Virus record (IMG/VR): IMGVR_UViG_3300046665_000548
Span: 124,001-188,000 of that record
Strand: one strand, 5' to 3'
Length of the DNA stretch: 64,000 nt
This document shows positions 3,884 to 62,833 of this stretch, in pieces (the stretch's first letter is position 1; each line of letters opens with the position of its first letter). Made by a program: the position numbers and the translations under genes. Below the pieces are notes generated by a model. That model ran no database searches and was not told where the DNA came from. It saw only the letters and a program-made list of their open reading frames with translations.

Positions 3884-4172
3884 CGCATGTTGCCTGGACA
3901 CCCTTCCCACGGTCTGCCACGACGTTTCGGGTATCTGATGCGTAATTGCGGCCTATCGTATCGCAACTTTTTAGTTGTCACGAGACCGTGGCAAGACTGG
4001 ACCGAGTTGGGGCCGATCAAGAAACGTCTCGGGATCAAGACCAAATACAAGGTGGAGCCTTGGACACCATCAACGACGACAGTTCGTTGGTGGATCGCGC
4101 TAGTATGCGCATTTTTATTTGGACGTTACCTCTAAACTTGACCATTGGGGATGCATCGCTGTAAATAGAGAC

Positions 4173-4211
4173 ATGCGTAACCCTCGAAACCCAATCTTTG
4201 CTGTCGATTGA
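4173..4211 (+). CDS. putative leader peptide MRNPRNPIFAVD
   Basis: ATG 5 nt after TAAATA (4162-4167); its stop lies in a hairpin (4204-4234) abutting the GAGG SD of the next gene. Confidence 0.55.
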   Translation: MRNPRNPIFAVD

Positions 4212-4242
4212 GCGGACTTTCCCGCTTTAATCGAGGTACATC

Positions 4243-4812
4243 TTGTCTAAGAAAGATTGGCGCAATCTGGGCGCTGTAACTGTTTGCGACTACAACAACC
4301 GTCGCTATCAGTTCAACTCTCTTGCCGAAGCTGCTCGTTACTTTGAACGCTACATCCCCGACCTGAAAAAGGGTCACCTGGGATATGAGCAGTTTGAGAC
4401 GCGTCCCTACCGGCGAGTTTTCATCGGCGGCGATAGCCACGTGTTCTACGACGAACTCGGGCTCACCATTCCTGTGTGGAAAGTTCAGGAAGCCTGCCGC
4501 AACCTGCCCTACGAAGCCCGCAGAAGCCGCTGGAGCCGTTTCCCTGATTACGATCATGCCAAGCACTACCGCAACGGTAGCGTGCCTGGAGTGCGTTGTA
4601 GGCGCTGGCATCGCGGCACTGGATCGCCGCGTCTCCACACTCAGTCGGAGATTCGCGAAAATGACTTTGCGAACAACTACGATGAGGACTGCGCGGAATT
4701 CCAAATCAAAACGCGCGGGCGGCGCTCTAAGCTTCCCCACCAGTGGGACGATCCAATGCGCTCGCGGCGCGGCGACGGATGGAAGCAGCACCGCCACAAT
4801 CAGTGGCGGTGA
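4243..4812 (+). CDS. Arg-rich hypothetical protein (TTG start)
   Basis: GAGG SD at 4233; 189 aa; basic C-terminus LPHQWDD...WK...QWR. Confidence 0.65.
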   Translation: MSKKDWRNLGAVTVCDYNNRRYQFNSLAEAARYFERYIPDLKKGHLGYEQFETRPYRRVFIGGDSHVFYDELGLTIPVWKVQEACRNLPYEARRSRWSRFPDYDHAKHYRNGSVPGVRCRRWHRGTGSPRLHTQSEIRENDFANNYDEDCAEFQIKTRGRRSKLPHQWDDPMRSRRGDGWKQHRHNQWR

Positions 4813-5242
4813 CTCAGACTTTTCGGATCATATAGTAGAGGTCCCAGACAAGGACCGAGACTGCGCCATCTTCGTGATCTTCCCACGGCCACGCCTCCTC
4901 ATCTGGAAAGGGCGGAAACGGAAACAGCATCACCGATGGGTCTTTGCGCGCCCAACGCGCAGACGCTTCCATACCGGCATGAAACGCTACCCGTGCTTGG
5001 GCATCAAGGAGAGTGGGAACCTCCGTAAACCCGTTCATCTCTACTAGCGCGTCATTGCAGTGAACAGTGAAACTCATGTGCTCAAATCGATGTCAGGGCG
5101 GACCCGAGTTAGGTATACGAATGCAGTGGCGAAGCCTATTGCCCCCGCCAAGTTATCCACGCGCGGTAGATCAAACATCCAACAAACTGTACCAGCGAGG
5201 GCTAATGCGGCCAAAGCTCCTCCGCATGACAATCTGACCACT

Positions 5243-5629
5243 TCAAGAAACCTGCGCATTTTTCATCATTTCTTGTTCGAGTTGACCCACGTCAAGAACA
5301 GGCATTGCGGTAATGTCTATCACGCCTTTGTATAGAAATACACCAGGAACGTCTATCAGATGAGGATCGTGTCTTAGCATGGTTTCATTCACGCGCGCAT
5401 CATCGATAACAATAACACGAAATTCTTTTAGCTGTTGAGAAGGAATACTATTCTCGTCACCCGCGTCGATATAGTGCTCGATCAGAAAATAGAGACAGAA
5501 TTCTGGCGTAAGACTGAGATAGACGCCGTTGTCACAGTCTGGATAGTTCTTCTCTACCAAAGCTCCGCCCAGCCCAAACCGGCGAATACTCGGGAGCTTC
5601 CAGGAGTGGGTTCCGTGATAGTAGGGCAT
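5243..5629 (-). CDS. ADP-ribosyltransferase-like / KptA-Tpt1-like fold protein
   Basis: YYHGT...IRRFGL...GVYLS pattern typical of the H-type ART/Tpt1 fold. Confidence 0.55.
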   Translation of the reverse strand: MPYYHGTHSWKLPSIRRFGLGGALVEKNYPDCDNGVYLSLTPEFCLYFLIEHYIDAGDENSIPSQQLKEFRVIVIDDARVNETMLRHDPHLIDVPGVFLYKGVIDITAMPVLDVGQLEQEMMKNAQVS

Positions 5630-5705
5630 CCAACGATGGTACCAGAAATATTTGGTTTGACCAGACAAGCATGATACCCAAGTGCATTGACTGGAAAGTT
5701 TTCGC

Positions 5706-11456: not shown

Positions 11457-11482
11457 GTGTTGAGGCGGCACATAAATATTTA

Positions 11483-12637
11483 ATGACCCCAACATTCTGT
11501 GCTGCGGCTTGGTCGAACGCCGTTCTCAAAACAAACGGCCGAAGCTCTATCTGCTGCGCAAATTCGGAATCATACGAGGTGCCGCACCTCACCGAATCGC
11601 TTCAACATCCCGTTCGTCTCGCTGCACGCGAAACTATGTTGCTGGGTCAGCCCGCGCGCGGATGCGAATCCTGCTATATGACTGAGGCAAACGGATCAAA
11701 AAGCCTCAGACACGAATACAACAATATGTTCGAGAACTCGCTCGACCGCAAAAGGCTGAACGAGCCCGCATACAGCCCAATCATGTATTACGATCTCTCA
11801 CTGTCGAATACATGCAATCAGAAATGCAGAATGTGCGGCCCCGATTCCTCTACGCACTGGATAAAAGATTACGCCGCTCTCCAAAAAGAGGGAATAGCTC
11901 CGGCTCAGGAAAACCAAGCGCATAGTCAAATCAATTCAATCGATTCAATCATCGATTCGATGAAAAGAAGCCTTGTGATCAGGCTCTCACTGAAAGGGGG
12001 CGAACCCCTATACATGCGCGAGGTAAAAATTCTGCTGCGAAAGATGGTAGAAAATAATCTCCATAGACGAACAACCTTCCTCCAGATCATCACGAACGGA
12101 TCAGTAGCCGATCAAGAAACGCTCGATCTTCTTCGACATTTTCAAATCTGCTATATCACTCTAAGCATCGACGCGTGTGGTCCCCTCTACAATTACATTC
12201 GGGGATTTAACAAGCCGTTCGAAGAAGTCGAAGAATCATTCCGGAAGATCATCGAAGTGCTACCGAGACACGTCACGCCGCGCATCAACACGACTGTCCA
12301 AGCCCTCAACGTCCTGCATCTGAACGATCTCGAAATATGGATCAGAAAATTCTTCAACGGGCCAGTCGATCAATACCTGTCGTTGCTGATATACCCAAAT
12401 TTCCTCAACATCTCTAACCTTCCCCTCATCGTCAAAGAAACAGCCATCGCCCGGCTCCAGCCACTTGGAGCCAGAGCCAATCACATCATCGCTCGTCTGA
12501 ACGAAGAAGAAAATCCGGAACACTTTCGCCAGTTCTTCCCTTATACGAGGGCGCTCGATGCACGCCGCGACGAAAATCTTGAAAACGTAGCACCAGAACT
12601 TGCCGAAATGCTCAGTTACAAAAAAACTGAAAAATAG
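11483..12637 (+). CDS. radical SAM protein with N-terminal twitch/SPASM-like Cys cluster
   Basis: CNQKCRMC (CxxxCxxC), GGEP, N-terminal C...CC...CxxC; TAAATA 4 nt before the ATG. Confidence 0.85.
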   Translation: MTPTFCAAAWSNAVLKTNGRSSICCANSESYEVPHLTESLQHPVRLAARETMLLGQPARGCESCYMTEANGSKSLRHEYNNMFENSLDRKRLNEPAYSPIMYYDLSLSNTCNQKCRMCGPDSSTHWIKDYAALQKEGIAPAQENQAHSQINSIDSIIDSMKRSLVIRLSLKGGEPLYMREVKILLRKMVENNLHRRTTFLQIITNGSVADQETLDLLRHFQICYITLSIDACGPLYNYIRGFNKPFEEVEESFRKIIEVLPRHVTPRINTTVQALNVLHLNDLEIWIRKFFNGPVDQYLSLLIYPNFLNISNLPLIVKETAIARLQPLGARANHIIARLNEEENPEHFRQFFPYTRALDARRDENLENVAPELAEMLSYKKTEK

Positions 12638-12639: not shown

Positions 12640-12671
12640 TTGACTTTCGAAACATGGTCTGTGTATAAATA
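12640..12671 (+). promoter_or_regulatory. promoter of tRNA cluster 1 (TTGACT -35 overlapping T4-type late box TATAAATA)
   Basis: TTGACT 12640-12645, TATAAATA 12664-12671. Confidence 0.75.
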
Positions 12672-12674
12672 GAA

Positions 12675-12782
12675 ATGTTCGCGGATGGTCCGCGTCAAAA
12701 GGATTCGATACGTAAGATGTCCAGCTTGTTTAACAAACGCTTTTGGCGGCGCGTGCGCGCTGTCTCGGAGGTCGCAAGCTGA
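12675..12782 (+). CDS. attenuator leader peptide MFADGPRQKDSIRKMSSLFNKRFWRRVRAVSEVAS
   Basis: Codon run TTG TTT AAC AAA CGC TTT TGG CGG CGC GTG CGC matches the downstream tRNAs; 3' end overlaps the antiterminator arm (alternative start ATG at 12717). Confidence 0.75.
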   Translation: MFADGPRQKDSIRKMSSLFNKRFWRRVRAVSEVAS

Positions 12783-13206: not shown

Positions 13207-13207
13207 C

Positions 13208-13622: not shown

Positions 13623-13673
13623 TCTATCTCAGTTTCGCGAAGCTAAATACTAGTTTAGCTCAGTAGGACTGAA

Positions 13674-14213
13674 ATGTTTTCTTGTGATGTTTGCTCTAAA
13701 GATTTTGCCACTTATCGCGGCTTAAACGGACACAAAAGACTCCATGGAGAATCCAGGGGGACGTATGTTGAAGGCTCTAGAGTTGGCGTTGGAGGGAAGA
13801 AACCGTTTAGACAAAACAAACCGTGCCAACGGTGCGGTCAAGAGTCTTTGAACAGCAAATACTGTTCGAATAAGTGTCAGAACGCTTATGAAAAAAGCTC
13901 TTTGATTGAGGACTGGCTGAACGGAAAAGACTCAGGTCTAGCTGCGGGCAACCGTCTGAAGAAATCAATACGTGATCATCTTCTTGCAGAAGCAGAATAC
14001 AAGTGCTCTTCATGCGGTTGGGACAAGATCAATCCAAAGAGCGGAAAGACTCCGTTAGAGATAGATCACATCGACGGAAATTCGGACAATTGCGTGAAAG
14101 ATAACCTAAGGGTCTTGTGCCCTAACTGTCATTCTCTGACGCCCACATATCGGGCGTTAAATTACGGTCGCGCAAATAAAGGTAGACTAAGATACTCTCG
14201 CCTGTGTAAATAG
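13674..14213 (+). CDS. HNH homing endonuclease with N-terminal C2H2 zinc finger
   Basis: CDVC...H-x3-H, LEIDHIDGN...NLRVLCPNCH; inserted within the tRNA cluster. Confidence 0.9.
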   Translation: MFSCDVCSKDFATYRGLNGHKRLHGESRGTYVEGSRVGVGGKKPFRQNKPCQRCGQESLNSKYCSNKCQNAYEKSSLIEDWLNGKDSGLAAGNRLKKSIRDHLLAEAEYKCSSCGWDKINPKSGKTPLEIDHIDGNSDNCVKDNLRVLCPNCHSLTPTYRALNYGRANKGRLRYSRLCK

Positions 14214-14220
14214 GGGTATT

Positions 14221-14296: not shown

Positions 14297-14565
14297 CAAT
14301 TTCCCAACGAGAATTCCATTGGCCAAATACTGGTATTTCGCAAAGTGCGATAAGTGCAAAGAAGTCGCGCACGTGATGGTGAATAATCCCATCGCTTCTG
14401 CCAGCTATCTTGGCGCGAAGAGCGGAAACATCCAGGCTTGGTTGACGAAGCATTATGCTTGCGAACTAACATTGGGATGGCGCGACGATCATCTCGATCA
14501 GCTTTGGGACGAAGGCTACACCAACGCCGATCTCCGAATGGATGACGACAAACCATAAATATCGG

Positions 14566-14943
14566 ATGAACTTGTCAGAAGTCATCCAGCCCGAACTTTC
14601 AAATGATTTGCTCGCCCAATTCACTGATGAGCTTGAGCAGCGTCTTGGCCTCAAGACCTTTTCCGTTTTCCTGTCCGGCAACGATATCAAGTTGAACCTG
14701 ATAGTCCTAGGAAAGGACAATCAGAGACTTGGGCGCGGCACTCAGGCCGTCTTCGCTCTGTGTGGACTGGCTGACAAGTATCACAAGCGAATCATCCTCA
14801 CGCCCGCTCAGAAGGACACGCACCATGGAACGACTTCCACTGCGCGGCTGGTCAATTTCTATAAGCGTTTCGGCTTCAAAGAGAACCGTGGGCGCAACAA
14901 GGATTTCTCGATTACTGCCGGAATGTATCGCGATCCTATGTAG
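14566..14943 (+). CDS. GNAT-family acetyltransferase-like protein, late leaderless
   Basis: QRLGRGT motif A, RLVNFYKRFGF; TAAATA 14556-14561 then ATG (MNLSEVIQPE). Confidence 0.7.
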   Translation: MNLSEVIQPELSNDLLAQFTDELEQRLGLKTFSVFLSGNDIKLNLIVLGKDNQRLGRGTQAVFALCGLADKYHKRIILTPAQKDTHHGTTSTARLVNFYKRFGFKENRGRNKDFSITAGMYRDPM

Positions 14944-17821: not shown

Positions 17822-18228
17822 CGGTTATCGAATTCGAATTTGGCGTATCCGACTGACTTTCTGCCGGTGATCCTGAATCCTTTGGTGATCCGCAGAAAGT
17901 TTGGTACGTCCTTGATGGCCCAGTCGTGGTCACCGAGTGGAATCCACTCGCACTGGATATCGCCGTCTTTGTCTGGCGTCACGATGATGATAGCCACCTC
18001 TCCATAAATGTGAAGACCCTGGCTCATTGGCGAATGGGTCGCTTCCATAGCATCCCAATAGTATTGATTCCCAGCCTCATCGATCAGACCGCGCAATTCG
18101 GTGTGCATCTTAAGCCCGGCGAGGAATTGCGTTCGGGAAGGGTTCGCGTACACCCTCACGTTCTTGTTGAAGATTTGTATCTGGAGGATTTTACCCTCGG
18201 TGAGGGTCAAGACTTCACGTATACGCAT
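17818..18228 (-). CDS. late leaderless hypothetical protein (paralog of 20176-20601)
   Basis: TAAATA 4 nt upstream; MRIREVLTLTE; NP...LRGL.D. Confidence 0.7.
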   Translation of the reverse strand: MRIREVLTLTEGKILQIQIFNKNVRVYANPSRTQFLAGLKMHTELRGLIDEAGNQYYWDAMEATHSPMSQGLHIYGEVAIIIVTPDKDGDIQCEWIPLGDHDWAIKDVPNFLRITKGFRITGRKSVGYAKFEFDNR

Positions 18229-18235
18229 CCGATAT

Positions 18236-18742
18236 TTAGGCTCTGTATCGATCAATTACCGCGAAGCATCGTGCGAGGTCTGGCATCATCTGCGTGGCCT
18301 CGATTTTGAAGCGGTCGTATTCCATTGGCTTCTGAATCTTGATTGCTCGGATAGCTTTCACGACGCCCTGAACGGGTCCGACAATCCGTTCCTCATATTC
18401 AGAATATGTTGGCGAGCCGCTTTTGAAACCGTCATCGAACGGCACGATCTTATGACGTTGCACGAGAATGTTGCGGTCGAAGACAATCACCGCGCCGCAT
18501 ACAGAATTTCCTGAGGGAAGGCATTGGATCAACTGATCTTCGATGTCGGTATCTTCGAGATCGATGAGCGTTCTGGTTGTTGCGAATTTCGAAGCGATAG
18601 CGGGTGATCGCGTGAGGCTTGCTGATCGAGCGCCTTCTGCGGTCAGTCTATCCGTTTCAATGATACGTACGAGCCATGGTAAACTGGTCCCGTGGTACAA
18701 GACAGATTGTCCAACATCTTCGTTGAGTTCGCGTACTAGCAT
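18236..18742 (-). CDS. ART-like protein, late leaderless
   Basis: LYHGT...SLTRS...EYEE; TAAATA 4 nt upstream; MLVRELNE. Confidence 0.6.
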   Translation of the reverse strand: MLVRELNEDVGQSVLYHGTSLPWLVRIIETDRLTAEGARSASLTRSPAIASKFATTRTLIDLEDTDIEDQLIQCLPSGNSVCGAVIVFDRNILVQRHKIVPFDDGFKSGSPTYSEYEERIVGPVQGVVKAIRAIKIQKPMEYDRFKIEATQMMPDLARCFAVIDRYRA

Positions 18743-18774
18743 CCGATATTTAGGATGTTCGAGTAAATACTTTC

Positions 18775-19041
18775 ATGGATATTCGTGCAATCATGAACCT
18801 CATTGAAGGTTCTTCAATCTACCCGTCGAAGAAGCATGGATCAGACCATGATTACGATGATAAGCATCTCGCTGCGCTAGAAAAAGCAGGCGTCGGTAAG
18901 GGTCCTTCTATTGAGGATCAGAAGAAGGAACGCGACGACGCCAAAGAGCGTGTTGCTGACAAGCGCGAAAAACGCGCCGTTTCCGAAGAAGAGCGCGTCC
19001 AGGTTCGCGAGTGGTTAGATCGGATTCTCGATAACCGCTAA
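18775..19041 (+). CDS. late leaderless small charged protein
   Basis: TAAATA 5 nt upstream; MDIRAIMNLIE. Confidence 0.7.
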   Translation: MDIRAIMNLIEGSSIYPSKKHGSDHDYDDKHLAALEKAGVGKGPSIEDQKKERDDAKERVADKREKRAVSEEERVQVREWLDRILDNR

Positions 19042-20099: not shown

Positions 20100-20175
20100 T
20101 TTGTAATCCCACGGTGTATTGTTTCGACTCAATCTACATCATTTCGATATTCAAGCAAGCGAAGTAAATACTCTC

Positions 20176-20601
20176 ATGAATATGCGAGAGATCATGAACC
20201 TGACCGAACGAGCTTCGGCGGTCAGGGTGACGACCCGATACGGCGACGAGAAAAAGGTTGTGGTTCATCGCAATCCTACCGCTATGGACCTTCATGCGTT
20301 CTTCTCAAATAAGGGCGATCTACGTGGTTTGTTGGACGTATCTAGTGGTACCGTTTTCTGGTGGGCTGCGGAAGAAGCTGTTCATTACGACGTGATCGAC
20401 GCGCTCGGGCTGGATAACTCGAAGGCTCTCTATGTGTATCCGGAGAGTTCTCCCGAAGCCGAATACTACGAACGCAATACTGGACGCCAGCCCCACGAAG
20501 CTGTTCTGTTGTATCCTAATTTGGATCAGAAAGTTGTTTTGAGCAATCGTTTCATCAAGTCTTACATGGAAAGCGGAATGTTTGATCCGCAGCGATACTG
20601 A
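20176..20601 (+). CDS. late leaderless hypothetical protein (paralog of 17818-18228)
   Basis: TAAATA 5 nt upstream; MNMREIMNLTE. Confidence 0.7.
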   Translation: MNMREIMNLTERASAVRVTTRYGDEKKVVVHRNPTAMDLHAFFSNKGDLRGLLDVSSGTVFWWAAEEAVHYDVIDALGLDNSKALYVYPESSPEAEYYERNTGRQPHEAVLLYPNLDQKVVLSNRFIKSYMESGMFDPQRY

Positions 20602-23024: not shown

Positions 23025-23546
23025 TGGACTATATCAAAGGCATTTCACTGTTAATCGCTCCAATTGTTTGCGTAATCCTACTATTCTTGGCAGCTATGGG
23101 CATAGATAAAGGATTGGATGCCCAGCTAGGCCCCATGGTGTGCACCGAGAAATCCAAAATCAAAGAAATCACGTCACTCCGTTATAGGAGTGCTACTGTC
23201 CTGCTTGAGAATGGACAAAGTGTAGATGCTTATCAGGCAACGCTAAAGCCTGGAGATTACTGGTGTCTGAAAAGAGAACGAGTAAAGGTAGGTGAATGAC
23301 ATGGACCACGAGCTATTCTTCAACAAAGTCATGGAGCAGTTGCCTCCGGCCGATGGGATGCCGCTTATGCGAGCTTACATTATGAAGCATGGCGTAAACC
23401 CGGCTAACGCGCCTGCGCGATTTATCTCTGATTACGGGGCTCGCGCGTACGTCAACGGCAAACTGAACATTAACGAGCCCGCCGATCCTCACGCGGCGCT
23501 CGAAGAATTTCTTCACAGGAATAACCTAAAGGGCTAAATAAGCCCC

Positions 23547-24068
23547 ATGGACATGCGCACAATCATCGACGCTTCTCGGGCGTCTCCGCTTACAGAGAAA
23601 AAAGTCGGTGGTTCTGCGTGGGTGTTGATTGCCTGTCCAGATACCAGCGAAGTGCTATTGGCCAAGCGAGCCAAGTCAGCAAACAATCCAGGACAGTGGA
23701 ATCTATTTGGCGGCGGGCTCGAATACGGAGAGCAAGCCGTAGATACTGCATTGCGTGAGCTTGGCGAGGAAGCCGGAATAACCATTAACGTGGATATGCT
23801 CAAGTACAAGGGCTCCCACAACGGCATGAGCTTCTTCGTCCTGTATGCGCCACGCAATATGGTCAACTCTGCGATCCGCCCGAACCGCAAAGAAGTAGCG
23901 AAGATCAAGTGGTTTCCTCTCACCGCGCTCCCTAACGATCTGCATAAAAGCACGAAGATGTTCATCAAGGTTTGCACCCGACCAAAGAAGGTTTTCGGAG
24001 AGAGCCTGACAGAGACAATGGACCTGATCGAGTTCGAGAGTATCCTAACGGCCTCTCAGAAGACTTGA
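23547..24068 (+). CDS. Nudix hydrolase, late leaderless
   Basis: Nudix box GGGLEYGEQAVDTALRELGEEAG; TAAATA 6 nt upstream; N-terminal MDMRTII...PLTE. Confidence 0.9.
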   Translation: MDMRTIIDASRASPLTEKKVGGSAWVLIACPDTSEVLLAKRAKSANNPGQWNLFGGGLEYGEQAVDTALRELGEEAGITINVDMLKYKGSHNGMSFFVLYAPRNMVNSAIRPNRKEVAKIKWFPLTALPNDLHKSTKMFIKVCTRPKKVFGESLTETMDLIEFESILTASQKT

Positions 24069-24807: not shown

Positions 24808-25066
24808 GTTTGGCTATCGTTAATTTTGAGCACGATTCTCTAAATAGTTTTGTGCCTAGACGACCGCAAACAAGATTTTCTCGATTTATGGTTCACCTTC
24901 GCGGCGCAATGCGTGCCGCTAAGGTGGCCTTCTGCGTTATCGCGGCCTCCGTGGTCCTTTATCGGATCATCTTCACTGAGATCGATATGGCCGAAGCGAT
25001 AACCTCGCTACTTTCGGTCATTGCGGCGATGAACTAAAATAATTCACGTCAAACATGATTTTCTCG

Positions 25067-25098
25067 TTGACATCGAAATAACACCTGTGTGATAAATA
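25067..25098 (+). promoter_or_regulatory. promoter of tRNA cluster 2
   Basis: TTGACA 25067-25072 and TAAATA 25093-25098. Confidence 0.75.
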
Positions 25099-25103
25099 AA
25101 ACC

Positions 25104-25178
25104 ATGAACAAGAATGTCACAACAACCGTCGTTATTATTACGACCGTACGAAGCGGGAGCTTCGAACGAACGATGTGA
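25104..25178 (+). CDS. attenuator leader peptide MNKNVTTTVVIITTVRSGSFERTM
   Basis: 11 consecutive Thr/Val/Ile codons; the 3' half forms the antiterminator 5' arm. Confidence 0.9.
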   Translation: MNKNVTTTVVIITTVRSGSFERTM

Positions 25179-26562: not shown

Positions 26563-27840
26563 CGAAGCTTCTCTTGATGACCGCATGAAAGCGGCTGGTA
26601 TGTTCACGATTGACCAAATGATGGGCATCACCCCGCTCAGTCGTTTCACGATCCATGCCGGGATGACCGATCTCAAGTTCTTCGAAGCATGGCTGGATCG
26701 CCGGGCGCGCGAGATGCTGATGATGCGCGTCAAGTATGAGCTTGGTGATAAGCCGAAAGACGACATGTACGAATGGGTCGTGTCGCATGCCGCCTCGCTC
26801 ATGGAGGTTCGGGCCAATTTCAAAGCGGCGCTGGCAGGGGGAAACCCTAGCCGAGCCGACGATGATCCAATACCAAATAATTGACGTACAGCCGCGTCGT
26901 GATAGACTACGGGCATGAACAACCGTAGTTACGCCATGAAACGCGACAGTTTTGATTATTTCTTTTGGGGGCTTGGTGCTTTCATCGCCTGCCTCTTTGC
27001 TTTGATTATCTTCGTCGTTGTTGACGAGGCTGGCGGCACCGATCAGTCAACCCTGTCCGGCAAGGTTACGGGACGATATTACACCCCGCCTCAGACCCGC
27101 ACCACGGTGGACGGCCAGGGTCGAGTTTCGACCACGACTGATCCGGAAGAGTTTCACGTCTATGTCGAGGTTGAACAGATCGGCAATCAGAACCTCTCCA
27201 CCGATAGCCGCATCTACGGACGCGCACTAATTGGTGCTCCGGCAACGGTCGTCGGACGTGCTGGATGGATGACCGGCAACATCTACTATCGACTGAAAAG
27301 CATCGGCTCGCAGGGCGGCTCTACCGTCCAGTTCTGATGGCTTGACATTTGACAATTTTCTGTTAGTTTTCGTAGACAATTCACAGAGGGTCGGATGGGT
27401 AATTTGGAAAACACGTCGGAACGCATTAAGGCCGTGAAATCGGCCTTTAGTATCCTTGGATACGACGTGACCAGCGATCCCATTGAAGGTGCCGAGGAAG
27501 CCTTTTTGGCTGAGATTTCGCAGGTCTATATCAAGACTGAGAATTTCTATAGGAAGATTCTCAAAAAGAATCGGTACACGATGTTCAGCGACCGGTCTCT
27601 CGCGGACTTGCATAAACAGTTCCCCGAACCCGCTTGGGGGATCGAGGTTCGCCATGCGTCGGAGAAGGAAGCTCTTGAGCAAAAGATCGCTCGCGCCAAG
27701 GTAGACTTAGAGCAAGCGATTGAAGAACGCGATTCGGCTCAGCGTCGGATTGACGAGGCTCGAAGCGCCTTCCATGTGGCCGAACGCGCGCTGTTAAACT
27801 TTGAAGTTAACGCAACTGCGGCAGCTATTACTGCGAGGGC

Positions 27841-32333: not shown

Positions 32334-33398
32334 GGATTGCTATGCGAACCACACGGCAAGGCGGGATGATGCACGGTGGCCCATTCGGGGGCAAGGCCAT
32401 GGCCTATAATTCCCATTTGATTCCCGTGATCATCAATGGTCTACGTGTTGGGGCATATGTGTGGGACGAGGACCATTGGGTGTGGGAACGTGAATAATCG
32501 TTTCCAACCATGGCAATGCCAAAAATGCGGAGCACAGATCGGTTATCTCGGTCTGTTCTTCCAGAAATTCTTGGGGTGCTTCCTTTTCGTTGATTGCGAG
32601 AGGAAGAAATAACAACGGGGGTGTCATGTGTCGCAGTTTCTTGACGCGCTTAAGGACTTCTTCTCGTTCGGGAAGAACCGTCCTATTGTAATTTGCGTGA
32701 GGGTCGCTAATACGCGCGTGTGGCCTCCCTACCTTGATGAACGTTGCGAGGCAGTATGCTTTTCTTGCGACACAATGGTATCGTATGAAAAGAAGAATAC
32801 CCGATATAGAAAGCTCTGCTACGAGTGCCACTTGCAGGGGAGAGCTTGAGATTTGATTGGACTATAATGGCTAAGAAGAAGCTCGCGCGGCCTCCCGTGC
32901 GTTCAATTCGCAAGGACCTTCGCGAGTGTTTGAAAGAATGTGCTCACCGAGATGAACTGTATTCGTCTTCGGTGCATTGGGTAAAGATACTCGAAATCGA
33001 ACGTCGCAAAAAGCTAGCCAAGCTTCTCAGGCTGCAAATCAAAACATTCGCGAGAAAATCGTAATCAGCCACGAACCTACTGGTTCTCCAAACATCAGCA
33101 ATACACAAAACACAATGAGAAATGGCACTGCCAGACAACGGGCTTGCACGCGTTTTAGAATGTCCATCATCGCTCCTGTCTAATCATTTTGTTCATAGAT
33201 CGCATAGTGTTTAACTTGCGATCTATCTCTTTCAATTTATTCTGCAATTCGTCATTTTTGGTCAGCGTTGAATTGAAGCTCGCCATGCCGACCAAACACG
33301 TCAAAACGTCCAGTTCCTCGTTTGTGAATTTCGACATCATGTCCTCCCGTTGAAAGAATTTACTCGACTATCTACCAGATTTCGTTCTAAATAGGGTC

Positions 33399-38371: not shown

Positions 38372-38652
38372 TGTTGGACAAGGACGAGGCGTCGCTTCTA
38401 AATTCAATCTACACGCGGTCTATGGAGCAGGGTCGTGAGTGGTTTCCTTGCATCTGCAAAAAACAAGCGAGAATGGATGCGAGCGTACGGCTTATCAAAG
38501 CCGGGTTAATTGCTGTCGGAGAACGCGAGCCGCACCATCAGAGACTTCCACATTATTGGAGGATTCTCGGCCTCACCGAACAGGGAAAATTTATCGCCAA
38601 ACTATCTGGTTTCGATCTAGACATTTCAGACGAAGATTGGTAAATAACAACG

Positions 38653-38697
38653 ATGAATTCCACTCTCACCTACTTTGAGGCGATACGCACGCTCTAA
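38653..38697 (+). CDS. putative leader peptide MNSTLTYFEAIRTL with an ATA codon
   Basis: TAAATA 6 nt upstream; ATA at 38683; hairpin and two AUA-type tRNAs directly downstream. Confidence 0.6.
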   Translation: MNSTLTYFEAIRTL

Positions 38698-39365: not shown

Positions 39366-40076
39366 TCAGCGCGTTGATGAGATAGGGTGTAAATCTTCCT
39401 GGTGGAATACAAGGAAGATGGTCTGTGATTCTGGGCTGCTATCCCAATGTCTGCGGTTCCAAATGATCCCGCGTAGACCAGAGCCCTCCAGCAAGGCTCG
39501 ATACGCCTTGCAGTAGTCGGCGCTCTTACAAACCCGCGTGTAGTATTCCCGGCTCTTCTCAAGCGCGCGATACTTAGCAACCTTATCGGGTTGGCTCCAT
39601 CGAAGAACAGCCACTTCCATAGAGTTTTCGCCCTGTCGCTCCGCTTCGCGCTTTGCCTCGATCCTCAGGTCTTTCATGAACTTGATGTTCGCGCCGTTCA
39701 GGGGATACTTGGAGAGATGATCGGCGGCATCTTTGCCTACTGTGTCGCGAATGATCGGCAGACAATTCAGTACAAGCTCCCAGAAATCCTGATCGCGGCG
39801 AGCTAACAGGTATCGGCCTGGAGGAATTTGATAACCCTCAACGTTTGGCCCGTACATAGTCGTGGCCATCTCGCGGTTCGACGTGAGGTAAGTCCCCATA
39901 CTGTCGTAGGTCTTGATCTCGCGATTGGTAAGGACCTTGCCTAGAGCTTCGTGCGTGGCATGATATGCCATGACCGGCTTCTGTAGCGTGATTTCCTGAC
40001 CAAAAGACGAGCGAGAGTTCGGTTCGATAACCCCGCGATAACGTTCTGAAGCCTCTTTGATCTCACTGTAGCGCAT
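39366..40076 (-). CDS. ART-like protein, late leaderless
   Basis: AYHAT...GTYLTSNREMA..YG; TAAATA 4 nt upstream; MRYSEIKE. Confidence 0.55.
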   Translation of the reverse strand: MRYSEIKEASERYRGVIEPNSRSSFGQEITLQKPVMAYHATHEALGKVLTNREIKTYDSMGTYLTSNREMATTMYGPNVEGYQIPPGRYLLARRDQDFWELVLNCLPIIRDTVGKDAADHLSKYPLNGANIKFMKDLRIEAKREAERQGENSMEVAVLRWSQPDKVAKYRALEKSREYYTRVCKSADYCKAYRALLEGSGLRGIIWNRRHWDSSPESQTIFLVFHQEDLHPISSTR

Positions 40077-40136
40077 CACCTATTTAGAACCTTCAACTTA
40101 TTGCGTTTACTCCTCATCTGGCGATATTCTGGTTCG

Positions 40137-43391: not shown

Positions 43392-43982
43392 TGTGGACTG
43401 TGATCAGTGAATGGGACCTCGGTTTGGGGGACGTTGTGTTCGCCTCCAAAGATGAAGCTAGAGCCGAGGCCAAGACTGCTCTAGAAAGCTGCGGCATCGA
43501 AGAAAGTCTTGAGGAGTGCGAAGGCGACGGTTTGGTTAGCTACAAACAGTTGAAGGCGCGATGATGCACGATTTAAGACCGGGCGACGGGACAACCGCGA
43601 AGAGCTTCACCAAGGTTCTTCGTTCTGATGATGGCCGCGATGCACTCACCTTGACCTTCAAGCCACCACGTGGCCAGGAATTCGTCACCTTGTTTCTCGG
43701 AGTTGTTCAGAAAGGAACAGCGGACGTGGACATTGATGCGATGTTGGAACGATTGGGTTACGTGCCGAAGAGTAAACCATGAGCGAGAAGATCAAATTAT
43801 ACTCGGAATGGTTTCGTGATCCGTCTTATCATGGCAGCTACGCAGACTACGTGCTGCAAATGACGGTCGCCAATCAACGAGCCAACGAGGATAGGTTGGC
43901 AAATAAAATTGCTGATCTCGTTGTCGAGAAATTGAAGAAGAAAAGCATCGCAGATGCGATGTAACGGCCTAAATAACTTTGT

Positions 43983-44570: not shown

Positions 44571-44801
44571 CTAGGCTCCGATTAGTTTGGTGCGCGCCTG
44601 GATCAGTTTGACCCATGGTGTCGCATGAAAAACGCCCATCAGCACGTACATGACCGTCATACCGGTCAATACCGAGCCGGACCCTGCTACGCACAGCAGG
44701 TCAGGCGGTCCCCAGAAGATATTGAACAGAGCCATGAAGGCGAAAGTCGGTGTTGCTGCCAGGGCCAGCAATTCGATTTTTAACCAATTTGGCATAGGCA
44801 A
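44571..44801 (-). CDS. small two-TM membrane protein of proteobacterial type
   Basis: LALAATPTFAFMAL...GMTVMYVLMGVFHATPW. Confidence 0.6.
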   Translation of the reverse strand: MPMPNWLKIELLALAATPTFAFMALFNIFWGPPDLLCVAGSGSVLTGMTVMYVLMGVFHATPWVKLIQARTKLIGA

Positions 44802-44864
44802 ATCTCCAGGAATCGGTTATTTATTAGCGAACGGAACTCGTCTTTACTGGAGCTATCGGCCGAT

Positions 44865-53444: not shown

Positions 53445-53909
53445 CTACCTGAACTTTTCGACGGCCCTACAAAGGGCTTCGATTTCGAAGTTGGACATTT
53501 GCGAGCGGAGACGATCACGAACCGCTTCAATAGCGGCACGGGTTTCGTCACGATCCTTTTGCGCCTGTTCGGCGGCGGCGCGGGCCTTCTCGTCTTCAAG
53601 TCGGCGCTTCTCAGAAACGGCGGCTGCGTGAGCAATACGGTCCTCGATGGCCTTAAGACCATCTTCGGTTATCGTGTATAAACGGACAGTCCAAACCCGT
53701 CCATGCTTCTCTGGATCGTACCCAAACGAGTGGCGAGGCGCTGGGATATCTTTTTCCTCAGCGGAGACCAGCCCTCGCTTCATGAGGCTTTCGAGGATGC
53801 TTGCGTGGGTACTGCCCCACAGCCATCCAGCGCCCTGATACCAACCTTTCTCCCTGTACAGGGTCCAGAGAAAGCTCTTCTGTGAGGTGCCGAGTGGGCG
53901 GGTTTTCAT
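53445..53909 (-). CDS. winged-helix-like hypothetical protein
   Basis: LESLMKRGLV...YTITEDG; TTGACG-N16-TAGATT promoter 7 nt upstream. Confidence 0.55.
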   Translation of the reverse strand: MKTRPLGTSQKSFLWTLYREKGWYQGAGWLWGSTHASILESLMKRGLVSAEEKDIPAPRHSFGYDPEKHGRVWTVRLYTITEDGLKAIEDRIAHAAAVSEKRRLEDEKARAAAEQAQKDRDETRAAIEAVRDRLRSQMSNFEIEALCRAVEKFR

Positions 53910-53945
53910 GGTTGCAAATCTACCATGAAACTGAGTTTCGTCAAG

Positions 53946-54608
53946 TCATTTCTTGAACTGGATAGGTTGCTCGGCAGGGTCTATCATGACTAATCCGGCA
54001 TATGCAGCCCAAGTCTTGGGGTCGCCAAGATTCTTTTCCAAAGCCGCAAGATGAATTTCAACCTGGGGGAAATTCATTAGACCAACCTCTACGGCGGCCT
54101 GTCTGGCGTTCCACTGCGCCTCGTTATAGACAGTAAGCGCGGCATGAGCGTTCGCGTAAACTCGACCAGCCTGTTTCAGTTCTTCGAAAAACTGTTCGTA
54201 GGTCCCGTGATAACGTCCGTCTTCTTTTCTGTATTCGAAATTATTACGGATATTGTCCATGATTTCTCGTTCATGGCCGTATTCGTTCCTGAGGTAGCGA
54301 AGAGCTTTCCTGACCTTGGGCGCAACCGTTCCGTAGCCGCAGTTGCCGTGAACAACGTGTTCGCCATCAGCCATGCGATGAGTCAAATCACCGATATGCT
54401 CGGTATCCCAAGCGTAAAGACCTGCGCCGTGGTGAATATTAGGATTGCCGTTACAGGCACCGCCCATATTTTCAGGCTTTCCCAACTGACCTTTCGCGAG
54501 ACCATCGAACGCTTTGATAGCATTTGATTTGGCTGGCTCCGGTAGAGCCAAGATGACGGCCCATCCGCGAATAACCTCTTCTTCATTGATCAGATCACGA
54601 TATCGCAT
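53946..54608 (-). CDS. late leaderless hypothetical protein
   Basis: TAAATA 4 nt upstream; MRYRDLINE. Confidence 0.7.
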   Translation of the reverse strand: MRYRDLINEEEVIRGWAVILALPEPAKSNAIKAFDGLAKGQLGKPENMGGACNGNPNIHHGAGLYAWDTEHIGDLTHRMADGEHVVHGNCGYGTVAPKVRKALRYLRNEYGHEREIMDNIRNNFEYRKEDGRYHGTYEQFFEELKQAGRVYANAHAALTVYNEAQWNARQAAVEVGLMNFPQVEIHLAALEKNLGDPKTWAAYAGLVMIDPAEQPIQFKK

Positions 54609-54822
54609 GCGATATTTAGTGCTTCTCTACCTTGCGAACGAGTTGAGTCAGTTGATCGGATGTAATGTCGTATACGCGTAAATTCGGCGTTGGTGCGAGA
54701 AGCCAGTATTTCGAATCGAACTCGGACGAGCACGAGGAATCAGCGCCCATGGCTGCTGCGAGTAACACGCATCCTGGGCGCATTAGCGTAATGTCAAAGC
54801 ATATTTTCATCTGAACAGTCCA

Positions 54823-57573: not shown

Positions 57574-57620
57574 TCATTTTCCCCAACTAAAGTAAGTTCT
57601 GATCCCTCCTAAATAGCAGG

Positions 57621-58097
57621 ATGATGACCATTCGGGAAATACTGTTGTTGCTTGAGAGCGAAGAAATTCAGCCTCCGGATCACGTTCGGGCGGCGGAGAT
57701 GGATTCCAGGCTGCGCGACGTTGTGAGCGCTCTCCCACCGGTTACAGAGTGGGTCCCGCTTTTGAGGTCTCAAGCATGGTTCTCTCCGTTGCATTTCAGC
57801 GGCAACGAGGCAAATGCCATGGACTTCCAACCGAACGAATACGTATATTCACCAGTGGTCGATATTAGAACTGACCCGACCGCAAGAAGCGCGCATTATC
57901 GTAGAGGCGTGAAGAAGTATGTCGCGGCATTACGGCGCGGCGATACCTTGCCTCCGATCACGTACGTGTGGAATGCCCATTACTTAAAATGGAACATGCT
58001 CGACGGCAACCACCGTTCACAAGCTTACGCAGAGACAGGCACCTCAAAGATGCCTGCCATCTTTGCTTACCCTATTCGGGCTTTACTCCAACGGTAG
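57621..58097 (+). CDS. ParB/Srx-like domain protein, late leaderless
   Basis: LPPI...MLDGNHR; TAAATA 5 nt upstream; MMTIREILLLLE. Confidence 0.65.
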   Translation: MMTIREILLLLESEEIQPPDHVRAAEMDSRLRDVVSALPPVTEWVPLLRSQAWFSPLHFSGNEANAMDFQPNEYVYSPVVDIRTDPTARSAHYRRGVKKYVAALRRGDTLPPITYVWNAHYLKWNMLDGNHRSQAYAETGTSKMPAIFAYPIRALLQR

Positions 58098-58469: not shown

Positions 58470-58870
58470 GCATTCTCTCCATTGGGTGACATATTTGTGG
58501 TTCGATTCCACGATGCCGTCAAGGACCCCTGAACTAAATATAACCGTGCAGATCATTGGAACAAATCGTCGCGAAGGAATTGACTGGGTTCAAGATAAAC
58601 TCGGTCCTATGTGCCCGCGCACCACGGCCGAAACAACTTTCTTGGGGCTTCTCAAGGAAGGTCAGATCATCGGCTGCAAATCCGCATTCATTCTAGCGGA
58701 AGACATGGGAGACGATGATCTTCGCAACATCGCTACCGATGAAGTAAAAAAGCGAATGTCCGAACAGGACAAGAAGCGACGTAAAGCACCTCGCGCGAAT
58801 AACAATTTCGCAGTAAAGCGAGACGGCAGCGAGGACGATGGTTCTTTGATCACCGTCCAAGTGCCAAACC

Positions 58871-59817: not shown

Positions 59818-60135
59818 ATGCGTAAGGTGCCCAGGCGAAGGAGCACGACTGCTCGTGCTCTGTCCGACACTCGCTACCGTCAGCGGGTAGTCATCTCGAA
59901 GAAGGTTTATTCCAGGAAGGCTCGATCTCAGAAGGTCGAGCCTTCTGACTTCCGGGGATGCGGAGATTGGGTGGGGTATTCTCCGCATATAGTGCGGAGA
60001 ATGATTGGCACGCCCGGAGAGATTCGAACTCCCGACCTACAGGGTAGAAACCTGCCGCTCTACCGGCTGAGCTACGGGCGCATGCGATTATTTAACATTC
60101 TCGATACCAAAAGAATAGCAAAAATGCTTGCATAA
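59818..60135 (+). CDS. ArfA-like (alternative ribosome-rescue factor) basic protein, probably from a truncated mRNA
   Basis: ARALSDTRYRQRVVISKKVYSRK resembles ArfA [30 protein letters not shown] SD; in-frame hairpins before any stop. Confidence 0.55.
   Translation: MRKVPRRRSTTARALSDTRYRQRVVISKKVYSRKARSQKVEPSDFRGCGDWVGYSPHIVRRMIGTPGEIRTPDLQGRNLPLYRLSYGRMRLFNILDTKRIAKMLA
60006..60081 (-). tRNA. tRNA-Arg(TCT)
   Basis: Reverse-complement cloverleaf, loop TT-TCT-AC, G73, CCA; TAAATA at 60089-60094. Confidence 0.92.
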
Positions 60136-60650: not shown

Positions 60651-60667
60651 CGTTGGTATACTAGCCT

Positions 60668-60928
60668 ATGGCTTGCAAACGAAATTCAAAACTGACGGAA
60701 GCAATTGCCCCGCATCGCGTAGAGGTACGCGTGGCCGCAGAGTATTCCGGCCGCTGGAGCAAGCAACGCTGGAGGGATGCACAAAACCAGATGTTCTGGC
60801 TCGGTCACCCAGACAATGGCGCGGTTGGTGAATTCAACAACCGCTGGATCAATGAGGACGAAGGGCACGCCTGCTACTTGTTTACGGACGAGCGGACCGC
60901 TCTCCATTTCAAGATGGCGTTCGGCTAA
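60668..60928 (+). CDS. paralog family protein (YLFTDERTALHFKMAFG)
   Basis: Shared C-terminal motif. Confidence 0.6.
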   Translation: MACKRNSKLTEAIAPHRVEVRVAAEYSGRWSKQRWRDAQNQMFWLGHPDNGAVGEFNNRWINEDEGHACYLFTDERTALHFKMAFG

Positions 60929-61093
60929 TCAGCTTTCGAGATTAACTGCGTCGATGCGATACATGCTCTGCTCGACGCCAGCCGCAGCAGCGACAGCCGC
61001 AACCTTCTGCTGAGCTTTGATGTTCGTGGTGTGCACGCTGATCACAGTAACTCCGGTATTGGTCTTGCGGGAGACGACGTATACGATCTTCAT
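60929..61093 (-). CDS. small late leaderless protein (54 aa, not in ORF track)
   Basis: TAAATA 6 nt upstream of the ATG; MKIVYVVSRK. Confidence 0.55.
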   Translation of the reverse strand: MKIVYVVSRKTNTGVTVISVHTTNIKAQQKVAAVAAAAGVEQSMYRIDAVNLES

Positions 61094-61102
61094 GGTGATT
61101 AT

Positions 61103-61324
61103 TTATCCCTGATGTTGATGCGAACGTAAGCTCCTGGCCTTGTCGGCTAGACGCATTACGATGTTTGCTGAGTAGAATGGAAACAGAGCAGGGATTAACG
61201 CGTGTATGATCGAAGCCACCCCGGCAACGACTAATAAAACGCCAGCACTCAATGCGAAACAGGCATGAGCCATATAAGACTTGCCAGCTTCTTTGAGATG
61301 TTTAGCCGCAAAGGTTTCCCACAT
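61103..61324 (-). CDS. DUF6356-like small membrane protein
   Basis: KHLKEAGKSYMAH..FAL...IHALIP; TAAATA 5 nt upstream. Confidence 0.65.
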   Translation of the reverse strand: MWETFAAKHLKEAGKSYMAHACFALSAGVLLVVAGVASIIHALIPALFPFYSANIVMRLADKARSLRSHQHQG

Positions 61325-61354
61325 AACCCTATTTAGAGCGATGTAAATAGTCGC

Positions 61355-62833
61355 ATGACAGACGTTATTACGCGAAACTTGATTTCGCAGACCATTGAAA
61401 TCCATGAGCCATCTGGAGAGATCGTCCGTTACGAAGTCATAATTCGAATGATTGATTTCTATCGGGATTGGCTTGGCAGTGTTGGGATCGTTCGCGGCCA
61501 ACGCGGCATCATCTGCTTGCCCAACAGTGCAAACATGCAGGCATTGTTCTTCGCGTGTTTGGAGCTAGGGATACGGTTCATTGGTGCAGAGGAAAGGGAA
61601 TTCTACAAGTTTCCACGCTATCGAGTAGCCAACGTCGATTTTGCAATCACCTGTTCGGACTGGAAAGAGGAGATGGACGACCTTCCTTACCCTTTGCATG
61701 TTATGCCTGATGTAGCAGATATCAGCGGCATCGAGCTTCGGACACACATTGACCCAGAGGTCGAACCAGATGAGCCAGCCATCTTGGCGATCACCTCCGG
61801 AACGACCGGTGCTCCAAAAATTATTCAACACACGCACCAAACAATTTTGCCAGCAATCCGCCGCGCCATGGAATGGTACGACCCCAAAGATCGAGTTCTG
61901 TTCTACATGAACCTCAACCATCTTGGCGTGCTTACTATCTTTACCCTGCCAGTGCTCCTCACCGGCTGTCGGATCGTTCTCTGTCGCAACAATTTCGTAG
62001 AGCCACTTATCGAGGGGCTAACGACACGAAGCCTTGGCGGAATAGATAAGCTGCTCATGTTTGATTGGTCTTGGGGGCGGATCGTCAACGCGTATAAAGG
62101 CGAGCAGCCGTTGCTCGGTACAAACAAACCAACGGTGATAACTGGCGGAAAACCAATCCCGCCATCGTTCATTGAGAGCTTGCTGATCAACGGGGCAGGA
62201 GAAGTCAAAGTCGCTTATGGAATGACCGAAGCCCCGCCACCAGTGATAGTGAAGTCTGTGACCTCGGTCGAAGGTTACAGTCGTTCATTTCTGGGCCAAC
62301 CCCTGGAAGGCTGGCGTACAATCGTCATGGCAAACGGATCGCTTCTCCTACGAGGAGACGGCATTGGTTTAGACAATCGGGGCAGGTCTTTGAGCGACCC
62401 GCTTGGATGGTTTATGACCCCTGACTTGTGCTGGTTGGAGGGCGATGAGATACACATTCGATCCAGGCGAACGATCAATAAACGAAACGGTCAAACCGTA
62501 TTCCTTGACGACATTATCGCTGAGATGTTTTTCAAGCCGCTCGATGTGCCTTTTGTAATCTGTCCGCTTCAAACGAAAGAGGACGAAGACCTCAAAATAT
62601 GTGCGTTCACGGGTCGCAATCAAATTATGATCGATGGTGGACCCACGAACCTGGAAACGATCAACTCGATAATTCGCTCCACCATGATACCCGAGTACCA
62701 GATCGACCATCTGTTTCTGATGGATGAGATACCCGATAACGGTCTAAAGCCAGATCACACAAAGCTACGAAAGATTGCGCTTCAGACCATTGCGGAACAG
62801 GGAGAAAAAGGGGAATATCTGGTGAAGATTTAA
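61355..62833 (+). CDS. AMP-binding (ANL superfamily) adenylate-forming enzyme
   Basis: TSGTTGAPK, YGMTEA, C-terminal K; TAAATA 5 nt upstream. Confidence 0.85.
   Translation: MTDVITRNLISQTIEIHEPSGEIVRYEVIIRMIDFYRDWLGSVGIVRGQRGIICLPNSANMQALFFACLELGIRFIGAEEREFYKFPRYRVANVDFAITCSDWKEEMDDLPYPLHVMPDVADISGIELRTHIDPEVEPDEPAILAITSGTTGAPKIIQHTHQTILPAIRRAMEWYDPKDRVLFYMNLNHLGVLTIFTLPVLLTGCRIVLCRNNFVEPLIEGLTTRSLGGIDKLLMFDWSWGRIVNAYKGEQPLLGTNKPTVITGGKPIPPSFIESLLINGAGEVKVAYGMTEAPPPVIVKSVTSVEGYSRSFLGQPLEGWRTIVMANGSLLLRGDGIGLDNRGRSLSDPLGWFMTPDLCWLEGDEIHIRSRRTINKRNGQTVFLDDIIAEMFFKPLDVPFVICPLQTKEDEDLKICAFTGRNQIMIDGGPTNLETINSIIRSTMIPEYQIDHLFLMDEIPDNGLKPDHTKLRKIALQTIAEQGEKGEYLVKI

Follow-up and report, generated by a model that had tools for sequence, protein, structure and literature searches.

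The DNA analysed here is a 64-kb window, bases 124001-188000 of the IMG/VR virus record IMGVR_UViG_3300046665_000548, and the element in question is the hexamer TAAATA, which stands directly in front of many of its start codons. The whole record, called G000 below, is 607,744 bp long and is rated complete by CheckV. It has a G+C content of 51.7% and carries 57 transfer RNA (tRNA) genes, a permuted transfer-messenger RNA (tmRNA) and a T4-type major capsid gene (Pfam Gp23, E = 2.5e-93). Genes were called over the whole record with a simple codon-usage scorer of open reading frames (ORFs), which gave 781 genes, with 84.6% of the sequence coding and 15.6% intergenic. Coordinates are those of the window unless G000 is named.

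The window contains 28 TAAATA sites, compared with 14.1 ± 3.8 in shuffled sequence, and none of 100 shuffles reached 28. An ATG or GTG follows at a spacer of 3-6 nucleotides (nt) in 20 of the 28 sites, against a chance level of 12% (binomial p = 4e-13). Three further sites lie 7-8 nt ahead of tRNA genes.

We refer to sites in which the box abuts a start codon as fused. The spacer is 4 nt in front of a radical SAM gene of 384 residues (11473..11485 (+), start 11483), where a minus-strand TAAATA at 11477-11482 is the palindromic partner of the plus-strand box, and in front of ORFs of 125 (14556..14568 (+), start 14566), 136 (18226..18238 (-), start 18228), 236 (40074..40086 (-), start 40076) and 220 residues (54606..54618 (-), start 54608). 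It is 5 nt before ORFs of 141 (20165..20178 (+), start 20176) and 158 residues (57610..57623 (+), start 57621), and before two GTG codons. One of these opens a 115-residue ORF (58535..58548 (+), start 58546) that could instead begin further upstream, at ATG 58468, and the other a 61-residue ORF (24841..24854 (+), start 24852), the weakest case because of its GTG and short length. A spacer of 6 nt is found before a NUDIX gene of 173 residues (23535..23549 (+), start 23547) and a 54-residue ORF (61091..61105 (-), start 61093).

In two places, back-to-back boxes separate divergent genes. ATG 18742(-) and ATG 18775(+) are 32 nt apart (18740..18777), with boxes at 18747-18752 on the minus and 18764-18769 on the plus strand. 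ATG 61324(-) is 30 nt from ATG 61355(+), the start of an AMP-binding enzyme of 492 residues (61322..61357), and each has one TAAATA.

Other boxes precede very short ORFs. Three of them belong to composite promoters with a -35 box: TTGACC-N18-TAAATA-N5-ATG (4138..4175 (+)), whose ATG at 4173 opens only a 12-codon ORF; TTGACT-N20-TAAATA-N3-ATG (12640..12677 (+)), with a 35-codon leader ORF at 12675 followed by a seven-tRNA operon (12940-13622); and TTGACA-N20-TAAATA-N5-ATG (25067..25106 (+)), with a 24-codon leader ORF at 25104, rich in Thr, Val and Ile, followed by a tRNA-Ile/Thr/Thr/Thr/Val operon. A 25-codon ORF with spacer 5 (33388..33401 (+), start 33399) lies upstream of a class I (Met-type) tRNA synthetase gene, and a 14-codon ORF with spacer 6 (38641..38655 (+), start 38653) upstream of tRNA-Met (38818).

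The tRNA sites are TAGACT-N18-TAAATA (14183..14220 (+)), 8 nt before tRNA-Val(TAC) at 14221 and with A as the sixth base after the box, and two boxes 7 nt before tRNA-Arg genes: 43970..43982 (+) before tRNA-Arg(CCT) at 43983, and 60082..60094 (-) before tRNA-Arg(TCT) at 60081-, where the fifth and sixth bases are C and A. Leadered sites are represented by 13644..13676 (+), with 24 nt between box and ATG 13674 (179 residues), and 44793..44823 (-), with a 22-nt leader containing a GGAG-type core before a 74-residue ORF.

A first-pass annotation of this window had listed 20 boxes 3-6 nt before ATG or GTG codons and one 7 nt before each tRNA-Arg gene, and every one of these coordinates is correct. 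It had also placed an identical 13-mer, TAAATATCGGATG, at 14556+, 18238- and 18752- in front of three unrelated genes. The positions hold; the word unrelated is doubtful, since the products of 18228- and 18742- have a common N-terminal motif and may be related.

The association extends over the whole genome. G000 has 210 TAAATA sites, 182 of which fall in the intergenic fraction. The distance to a following ATG peaks at 5 nt: ATG stands at spacers 4, 5 and 6 in 27, 44 and 12 sites (83 in total, about 40%), and at most other short spacers in 0-8. At 84 sites, a spacer of 3-7 leads to a start that opens an ORF of at least 40 codons; the remainder lie ahead of tRNAs (6), elsewhere in intergenic DNA (92) or within genes (28). 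In an unbiased count of hexamers upstream of gene starts, TAAATA is the most enriched (62 against 1.35 expected), outranking Shine-Dalgarno hexamers including AGGAGA. The sequence is also strict. The exact hexamer abuts a long ORF in 32% of its occurrences, compared with 0-3.4% for each of the 18 single-mismatch variants, and in a logo of the 84 sites the hexamer alone is conserved, preceded by a base that is almost never T and by neither a -35 nor a TGn signal.

Roughly half of the intergenic boxes stand away from any gene start, and most of these have a leader of 15-30 nt, usually with a Shine-Dalgarno sequence. Among the 92 other intergenic sites, 58 have a gene start within 8-60 nt, 37 of them with a Shine-Dalgarno-like core. 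Four of the six tRNA sites lie 7-10 nt before the tRNA start. Structural genes that carry the box encode the tail sheath, baseplate hub, fibre, head-tail adaptor, sheath stabiliser and virion proteins; genes for radical SAM, NUDIX and AMP-binding enzymes are found behind it as well.

Several properties of the fused-box genes are consistent with translation from a leaderless messenger RNA (mRNA). A Shine-Dalgarno core (GGAG, GAGG or AGGA) occurs at -16 to -4 in just 2 of 74 of these genes. Their first 36 nt are less structured, with a folding energy of -3.3 kcal/mol compared with -4.6 kcal/mol in Shine-Dalgarno-led genes (p = 5e-4), and ATG is the start codon in 74 of 84 (88%) versus 225 of 288 (78%), a weak difference (p = 0.04). 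In three fused-box proteins, residue 3 or 4 is where a PHROG profile begins to align, with its second position, so these three ATGs are the real N-termini. The upstream neighbour is divergent for 42 of the 84 genes, each of which would need its own promoter at that place. Three divergent pairs in G000, including the two in the window, have ATGs 28-32 nt apart with back-to-back boxes between them, a gap too short to hold a -35 box, a leader or a Shine-Dalgarno-type ribosome-binding site as well. Since the box also stands ahead of tRNA genes, a purely translational role is ruled out. These data imply an unusually large set of putatively leaderless mRNAs, for which initiation by 70S ribosomes is the known route.

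The late promoter of phage T4 offers a geometry for these sites. It is an 8-bp box at -13 to -6, TATAAATA, roughly one helical turn ahead of +1, with a very tight consensus and no -35 element. TAAATA corresponds to -11 to -6 of that box, which puts the predicted +1 at the sixth base after the hexamer; with the modal spacer of 5, this is the A of the ATG. Signals away from start codons agree with this register. Of the 92 other intergenic sites, 44 have A as the sixth base (p = 1e-6) and 34 have C as the fifth, and G tends to occupy the fourth position. This preference for C and A at bases 5 and 6 is, by its sequence, the usual pyrimidine-purine signature of a transcription start. In the spacer-5 class, a pyrimidine precedes the ATG in 32 of 36 sites.

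A second promoter class, TTGACR-N16-TAGATT, serves as a control. It has 89 matches in G000, 61 of them intergenic, with a spacer of exactly 16 in 49 of the 61 and often TGG directly ahead of the -10 box, and probably comprises early promoters read by host sigma-70. In the window it is found on the plus strand at 15799-15825, 20605-20632, 21268-21295, 24065-24092, 24398-24425, 26881-26908, 27342-27369 and 29998-30025, and on the minus strand at 53944-53917. Most sites of this class are followed by a leader bearing a Shine-Dalgarno sequence, with a hump at 18-30 nt, and a subset shows a sharp ATG peak at spacer 6 (nine sites, each leading into an ORF of 40 codons or more). Window examples of a close start are TTGACG-N16-TAGACT-N6-ATG (26881..26917 (+), 140 residues), leaderless-type at spacer 6, and TTGACG-N16-TAGATT-N7-ATG (53907..53944 (-), 154 residues). 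The -10 hexamer of sigma-70 promoters ends at -7 and the T4 box at -6, so that if the A of the ATG is +1 the peak is expected one base further in this class, at 6 rather than 5. The C/A preference, the shift between the two classes and the close divergent pairs are three independent lines of support for the predicted start site.

A sigma factor to match is encoded outside the window. An ORF of 276 residues at G000 390863-391693(-) matches phrog_12791 (E = 5e-65) and phrog_234 (E = 2.7e-19), the two PHROG families to which T4 gp55 belongs. Identity to T4 gp55 is 24% over the whole alignment, in which only the C-terminal half of the G000 protein takes part, and the protein has a long N-terminal extension. 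Its closest annotated relatives, from PA5oct, PBECO4 and Phosso, are labelled 'sigma factor for late transcription'. The gene itself is preceded by a TTGCGA-N18-TATAAC element and a GAGG Shine-Dalgarno core, and such a sigma-70-like promoter with a ribosome-binding site fits expression ahead of the late genes. No match to a phage RNA polymerase was obtained in G000 with the Pfam models RNA_pol_Rpb2_6, RNA_pol_Rpb1_2 and T7-type RNA_pol, the T7-type search being without a positive control. Pfam Sigma70_r2 gave just one match in G000, of 13 bits, which contains stop codons and is below the cut-off.

We propose that TAAATA is the core of a T4-type late promoter read through the gp55-family sigma factor, and that fused sites give rise to leaderless mRNAs; we put the probability of this reading at about 0.68. 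The host RNA polymerase carrying the phage sigma factor would recognise TAAATA and would require no -35 element. Transcription would start within one base of the sixth position after the box, and in about 40% of sites (83/210 in the genome, 20/28 in the window) the start codon would coincide with that point. From a fused site the mRNA would begin with AUG, lack a Shine-Dalgarno sequence and be translated as a leaderless message. Most other intergenic sites would yield a leader of 15-30 nt, usually with a Shine-Dalgarno sequence, or a tRNA. The sequence itself shows the motif with its strictness and positions, the sigma gene and the kinds of genes behind the box; from these we infer where and when transcription starts, that it depends on the sigma factor, and how the mRNAs are translated.

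Several observations weigh against this proposal. Positions -13/-12 are not TA in the G000 boxes, and the bases after the box are not AT-rich, whereas those of T4 are; variation at -13/-12 among late promoters of T4 relatives has been reported for phage Aeh1. In the spacer-4 class the base before the ATG is G in 19 of 29 sites rather than a pyrimidine. The C-terminus of the sigma factor is basic and proline-rich, unlike that of T4 gp55, which binds the gp45 clamp through a hydrophobic C-terminal motif. A search for the gp33 co-activator (phrog_254) in G000 and five relatives returned nothing at E <= 1; gp33 is small and diverges fast, and its absence from G000 is therefore not proven. The gp45-type clamp (phrog_223) gave no match in G000, nor did it in the control genomes. 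Activation may thus differ from that in T4, and the clamp mechanism of T4 is not to be assumed, given that homologues of gp33 and gp45 were not found. The box is not confined to classic late functions, as ribonucleotide reductase, PhoH, methyltransferases and tRNAs also carry it, and the major capsid gene, which probably lies within an operon, has no TAAATA of its own. The five window sites at 4173, 12675, 25104, 33399 and 38653 open ORFs of only 12-35 codons, and the gene calls in G000 come from a crude home-made scorer. Finally, a -35-like TTGAC stands 17-21 nt upstream of 12 of the 210 boxes, at sites of tRNA operons, the tmRNA region and leader peptides.

These 12 sites, often with TA-TAAATA, speak for taking the hexamer as the -10 element of constitutive or early promoters of host sigma-70, and tRNA and metabolic cargo is not classically late. 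We consider this unlikely. Around 170 other intergenic boxes have neither a -35 nor a TGn signal, and a sigma-70 -10 element normally needs A at -11 and T at -7, a combination that no register of TAAATA provides. The well-defined sigma-70-type class TTGACR-N16-TAGATT exists separately, its -10 box differs and its leaderless peak lies one base further out, and conservation of six positions out of six is typical of T4 late promoters and not of -10 boxes. The 12 composite sites themselves may be read by host sigma-70, by the phage factor or by both; they need not be late, because the TTGAC box may admit the host factor.

The position of the box directly upstream of start codons that lack a Shine-Dalgarno sequence would also suit an A/U-rich ribosome-binding or translation-enhancing element on longer mRNAs, with no promoter function, and the 42 of 84 genes that follow a gene on the same strand could use a transcript from upstream. 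Such an element is quite improbable, because the box also precedes untranslated tRNA genes, four of six at 7-10 nt, and because 58 of the 92 other intergenic sites lead a gene start further away, 37 of them with a Shine-Dalgarno-like core of its own. A/U-rich enhancers tolerate variation, yet any single mismatch removes the association. The C/A preference at bases 5 and 6 is seen without a nearby ATG, the divergent pairs 28-32 nt apart demand promoters at that spot, and the genome encodes a gp55-type sigma factor with a matching known target. Still less credit can be given to cleavage of long transcripts at TAAATA by an endoribonuclease, which would trim them to leaderless or short-leader mRNAs and release tRNAs. 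The fixed distances to mature tRNA 5' ends and to AUGs fit a processing signal, and MazF-type processing that yields leaderless mRNAs is cited in the literature. No positive evidence for it emerged, no nuclease search having been made; half of the sites stand at the head of divergent units, where nothing else is conserved that could supply the promoter needed there, and the motif equals the core of a known promoter for which G000 has the sigma gene. We rejected an artefact of gene duplication or of upstream TAA stop codons. Some paralogues do exist, as 16 of the 84 proteins have a common N-terminal motif, and TAAATA contains TAA; however, the flanks of the 84 sites are not conserved beyond the hexamer, the TAA of the box is the stop codon of the upstream gene in only 10 of 84, and the box is carried by unrelated families (radical SAM, NUDIX, AMP-binding enzyme, tail fibre, adaptor, methyltransferase).

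The interpretation that the first-pass annotation had attached to the box is partly supported. Two of its proposed checks, for a gp55-like sigma gene and for positional enrichment, came out positive, the first through the phrog_12791 and phrog_234 matches and the second very strongly, at spacers 4-6 genome-wide. The T4 octamer that it had taken as a model agrees with G000 in geometry and in the core TAAATA, and only the hexamer is conserved. Its idea that mRNAs start at or next to the AUG agrees with T4 geometry at spacer 5 and does not extend to the roughly half of intergenic sites that stand away from gene starts. That such a start would also synchronise the leader-peptide ribosome with RNA polymerase in the attenuators is speculation. 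The label 'late' is favoured by the structural genes and blurred by the 12 TTGAC-bearing sites and the mixed cargo. Leaderless starts as a trait of the late class do not stand: the presumably early TTGACR-N16-TAGATT promoters have a leaderless-type subset too, so the feature belongs to the phage and not only to its late genes.

Compared with T4, whose late promoters are served by gp55, gp33 and the gp45 clamp, G000 has the same core TAAATA, the same lack of a -35 element and the same strictness. Both encode a gp55-family sigma factor and have structural genes downstream and promoters on both strands. In contrast to T4, only a 6-mer is conserved in G000, with any preceding base but T, the sigma factor has a long N-terminal extension and a different C-terminus, and homologues of gp33 and gp45 were not found. 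The distance to the gene also differs. Nearly all T4 TATAAATA sites with an ATG within 30 nt have it at 12-30 nt, as a rule together with a Shine-Dalgarno-like core. An ATG within 5 nt is seen at only about three T4 sites, whereas 40% of G000 boxes abut a start codon.

Leaderless late transcription itself has been described in the Thermus phages phiYS40 and Lalka27a, in which most middle and late transcripts were mapped experimentally as leaderless. Such transcripts begin directly with the A or G of their start codon, as mapped in those phages and predicted here. As proposed for G000, late promoters in the Thermus phages do without a -35 element and the host polymerase takes on an altered specificity; the host phylum, the promoter motif (TAGGGT-type in Lalka27a) and the specificity factor are different. 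We judge that the fusion of a gp55-type box to start codons is new, while leaderless late transcripts in phiYS40 and Lalka27a and leaderless mRNAs in Alphaproteobacteria were known before. A literature search, which was not exhaustive, turned up neither a description of gp55-type promoters joined to start codons nor one of huge phages with leaderless mRNAs.

Among cultured phages, the G000 sigma factor is 43-45% identical to those of Pseudomonas phage PA5oct and Sinorhizobium phage Phosso and about 40% identical to that of Escherichia phage PBECO4 (Asteriusvirus). All three have the same long gp55-like protein and a transcription that depends on the host polymerase, and in Phosso, as in G000, an adenylyltransferase gene is divergent from the sigma gene. 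Yet TAAATA-N4-6-ATG is not enriched in PA5oct, PBECO4 or Phosso (6/141, 33/611 and 9/213 sites), at or below the control with the reversed pattern. Published promoters of PA5oct are of the type TTGAC + TATAATA.

Uncultured relatives were found by scanning viral contigs with an alignment of sigma proteins, after a scan with the single protein had found none; all but one (G005) are fragments. The closest, G001 (62% identity, 39.5 kb), has 12 TAAATA sites, six at spacer 4-5 and five at spacer 20-31. G005 (49% identity, 462 kb, complete) has 140, of which 16 are at spacer 4-6, against one in the reversed control, and 63 are leadered by ORF criteria; A is enriched at bases 5-7 after its boxes. The fused arrangement is kept in three orthologue pairs. 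From the comparison of G001, G005 and the cultured relatives, the box looks old in the clade, with its fusion to start codons apparently expanded in the lineage of G000 and G001.

The host of G000 is probably an alphaproteobacterium, because the phage's aspartyl-tRNA synthetase (AspRS), encoded in the window, is closest to those of Hyphomicrobiales (60-63% identity) and its two-piece tmRNA has the tag ANDN...ALAA. Such a host supports the proposed promoter-start fusion, since leaderless mRNAs are common and well translated in that group: 375 are known in Caulobacter crescentus, where they are translated as well as leadered ones, and 171 in Sinorhizobium meliloti. They resemble the predicted G000 transcripts in their 5' AUG, the lack of a Shine-Dalgarno sequence, the unstructured 5' region and the likely host class. 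They differ in being cellular and in having sigma-70-type promoters, whereas G000 has a phage-specific box fused to the start codon.

Initiation factor 3 (IF3) disfavours leaderless initiation. Homologues are encoded by two relatives, at G005 226695-226946 (L158) and G006 217302-217547 (L159), both of which use mostly leadered late transcripts. An IF3 gene was not detected in G000, the genome with the most leaderless-type starts, in what is an anecdotal comparison of three genomes.

Short leaderless-type ORFs rich in the amino acids of the downstream tRNAs are found before tRNA operons, in the window at 25067-25233 and 12640-12906 and elsewhere at G000 343185, 523712, 259652(-), 253293(-) and 238128(-). 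Each is followed by a GC-rich hairpin, a T-run and the tRNA operon. Examples are MNKNVTTTVVIITT... before tRNA-Ile/Thr/Thr/Thr/Val, MMMNRNNSNN... before two tRNA-Asn, ...SSSSSS... before a tRNA-Ser cluster, ...HQHSHH... before tRNA-His, ...DEREED... before tRNA-Asp/Glu and ...LLQQLQL... before a tRNA-Gln/Leu cluster. These ORFs look like leader-peptide attenuators that would govern tRNA supply. Nothing relevant on leader-peptide control of tRNA operons was found in a non-exhaustive literature search.

As to function, we tentatively consider that the fusion of box and start codon is a licensing device, an idea that is possible and no more than that. As the fused genes lack a Shine-Dalgarno sequence, only transcripts from their own gp55-type promoter would be translatable, and read-through from upstream early promoters would yield no protein. 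Both steps, transcription and translation, would then impose the timing, and this design would have been expanded to about 80 genes in the lineage. The leaderless leader peptides on the -35-bearing composite promoters would run amino-acid-sensing attenuators at tRNA operons, and the undetected IF3 gene of G000, set beside the two mostly leadered relatives that have one, would be part of the same shift.

If the proposed reading is true, T4-type late transcription extends to a fusion of promoter and start codon in which no leader is left and divergent genes lie about 30 bp apart; neither T4 nor the cultured relatives tested show such a mode. The gene set would be among the largest leaderless sets of any phage, and it suggests a way for a phage to tie translation competence to the choice of promoter. 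The rule TAAATA-N4-6-ATG fixes the true start codons of about 80 genes for which ORF callers pick longer or different starts. Compact, portable expression parts are offered as well, consisting of a promoter of 6 bp and a single sigma factor, with no need for a ribosome-binding site. Framed as leaderless attenuators, the leader peptides of the tRNA operons may represent a new mode of regulating tRNA supply.

The N-terminal motif mentioned above is MNMRDLMxLxE-like and occurs in 16 of the 84 fused-box proteins, versus 22 of 710 others that match the pattern (p = 2e-7); by eye, about 10 of the 22 look like true family members. In the window it is found at 18775, 20176, 23547, 57621, 18228- and 54608-, with others genome-wide, and several of these proteins carry a YHGT/FHGS motif. 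In form it may recall the capsid-targeting propeptides of T4 that are cleaved at LxE. Pfam searches with ten fused-box proteins of the window gave one match (NUDIX) and none for the other nine.

A megablast search of window positions 30000-50000 against a phage collection returned no near-identical DNA. At G000 1944-4256, outside the window, there are two tRNAs whose CTA anticodon reads amber codons, and a further tRNA was called with an anticodon of four bases. The two CTA tRNAs prompted us to consider recoding of TAG, which was rejected: the gain in ORFs with TAG as sense is not above that with TAA as sense. TAG is the stop codon of 12% of the called genes in G000. The window has 16 tRNA genes, near three synthetase genes: a fragment or paralogue of a class I (Met-type) tRNA synthetase (33481-34785), AspRS (36116-38002) and seryl-tRNA synthetase (44865-46151). 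One of these tRNAs, tRNA-Lys(TTT) at 13536-13622, has a called length of 87 nt, which is unusually long for a type I tRNA.

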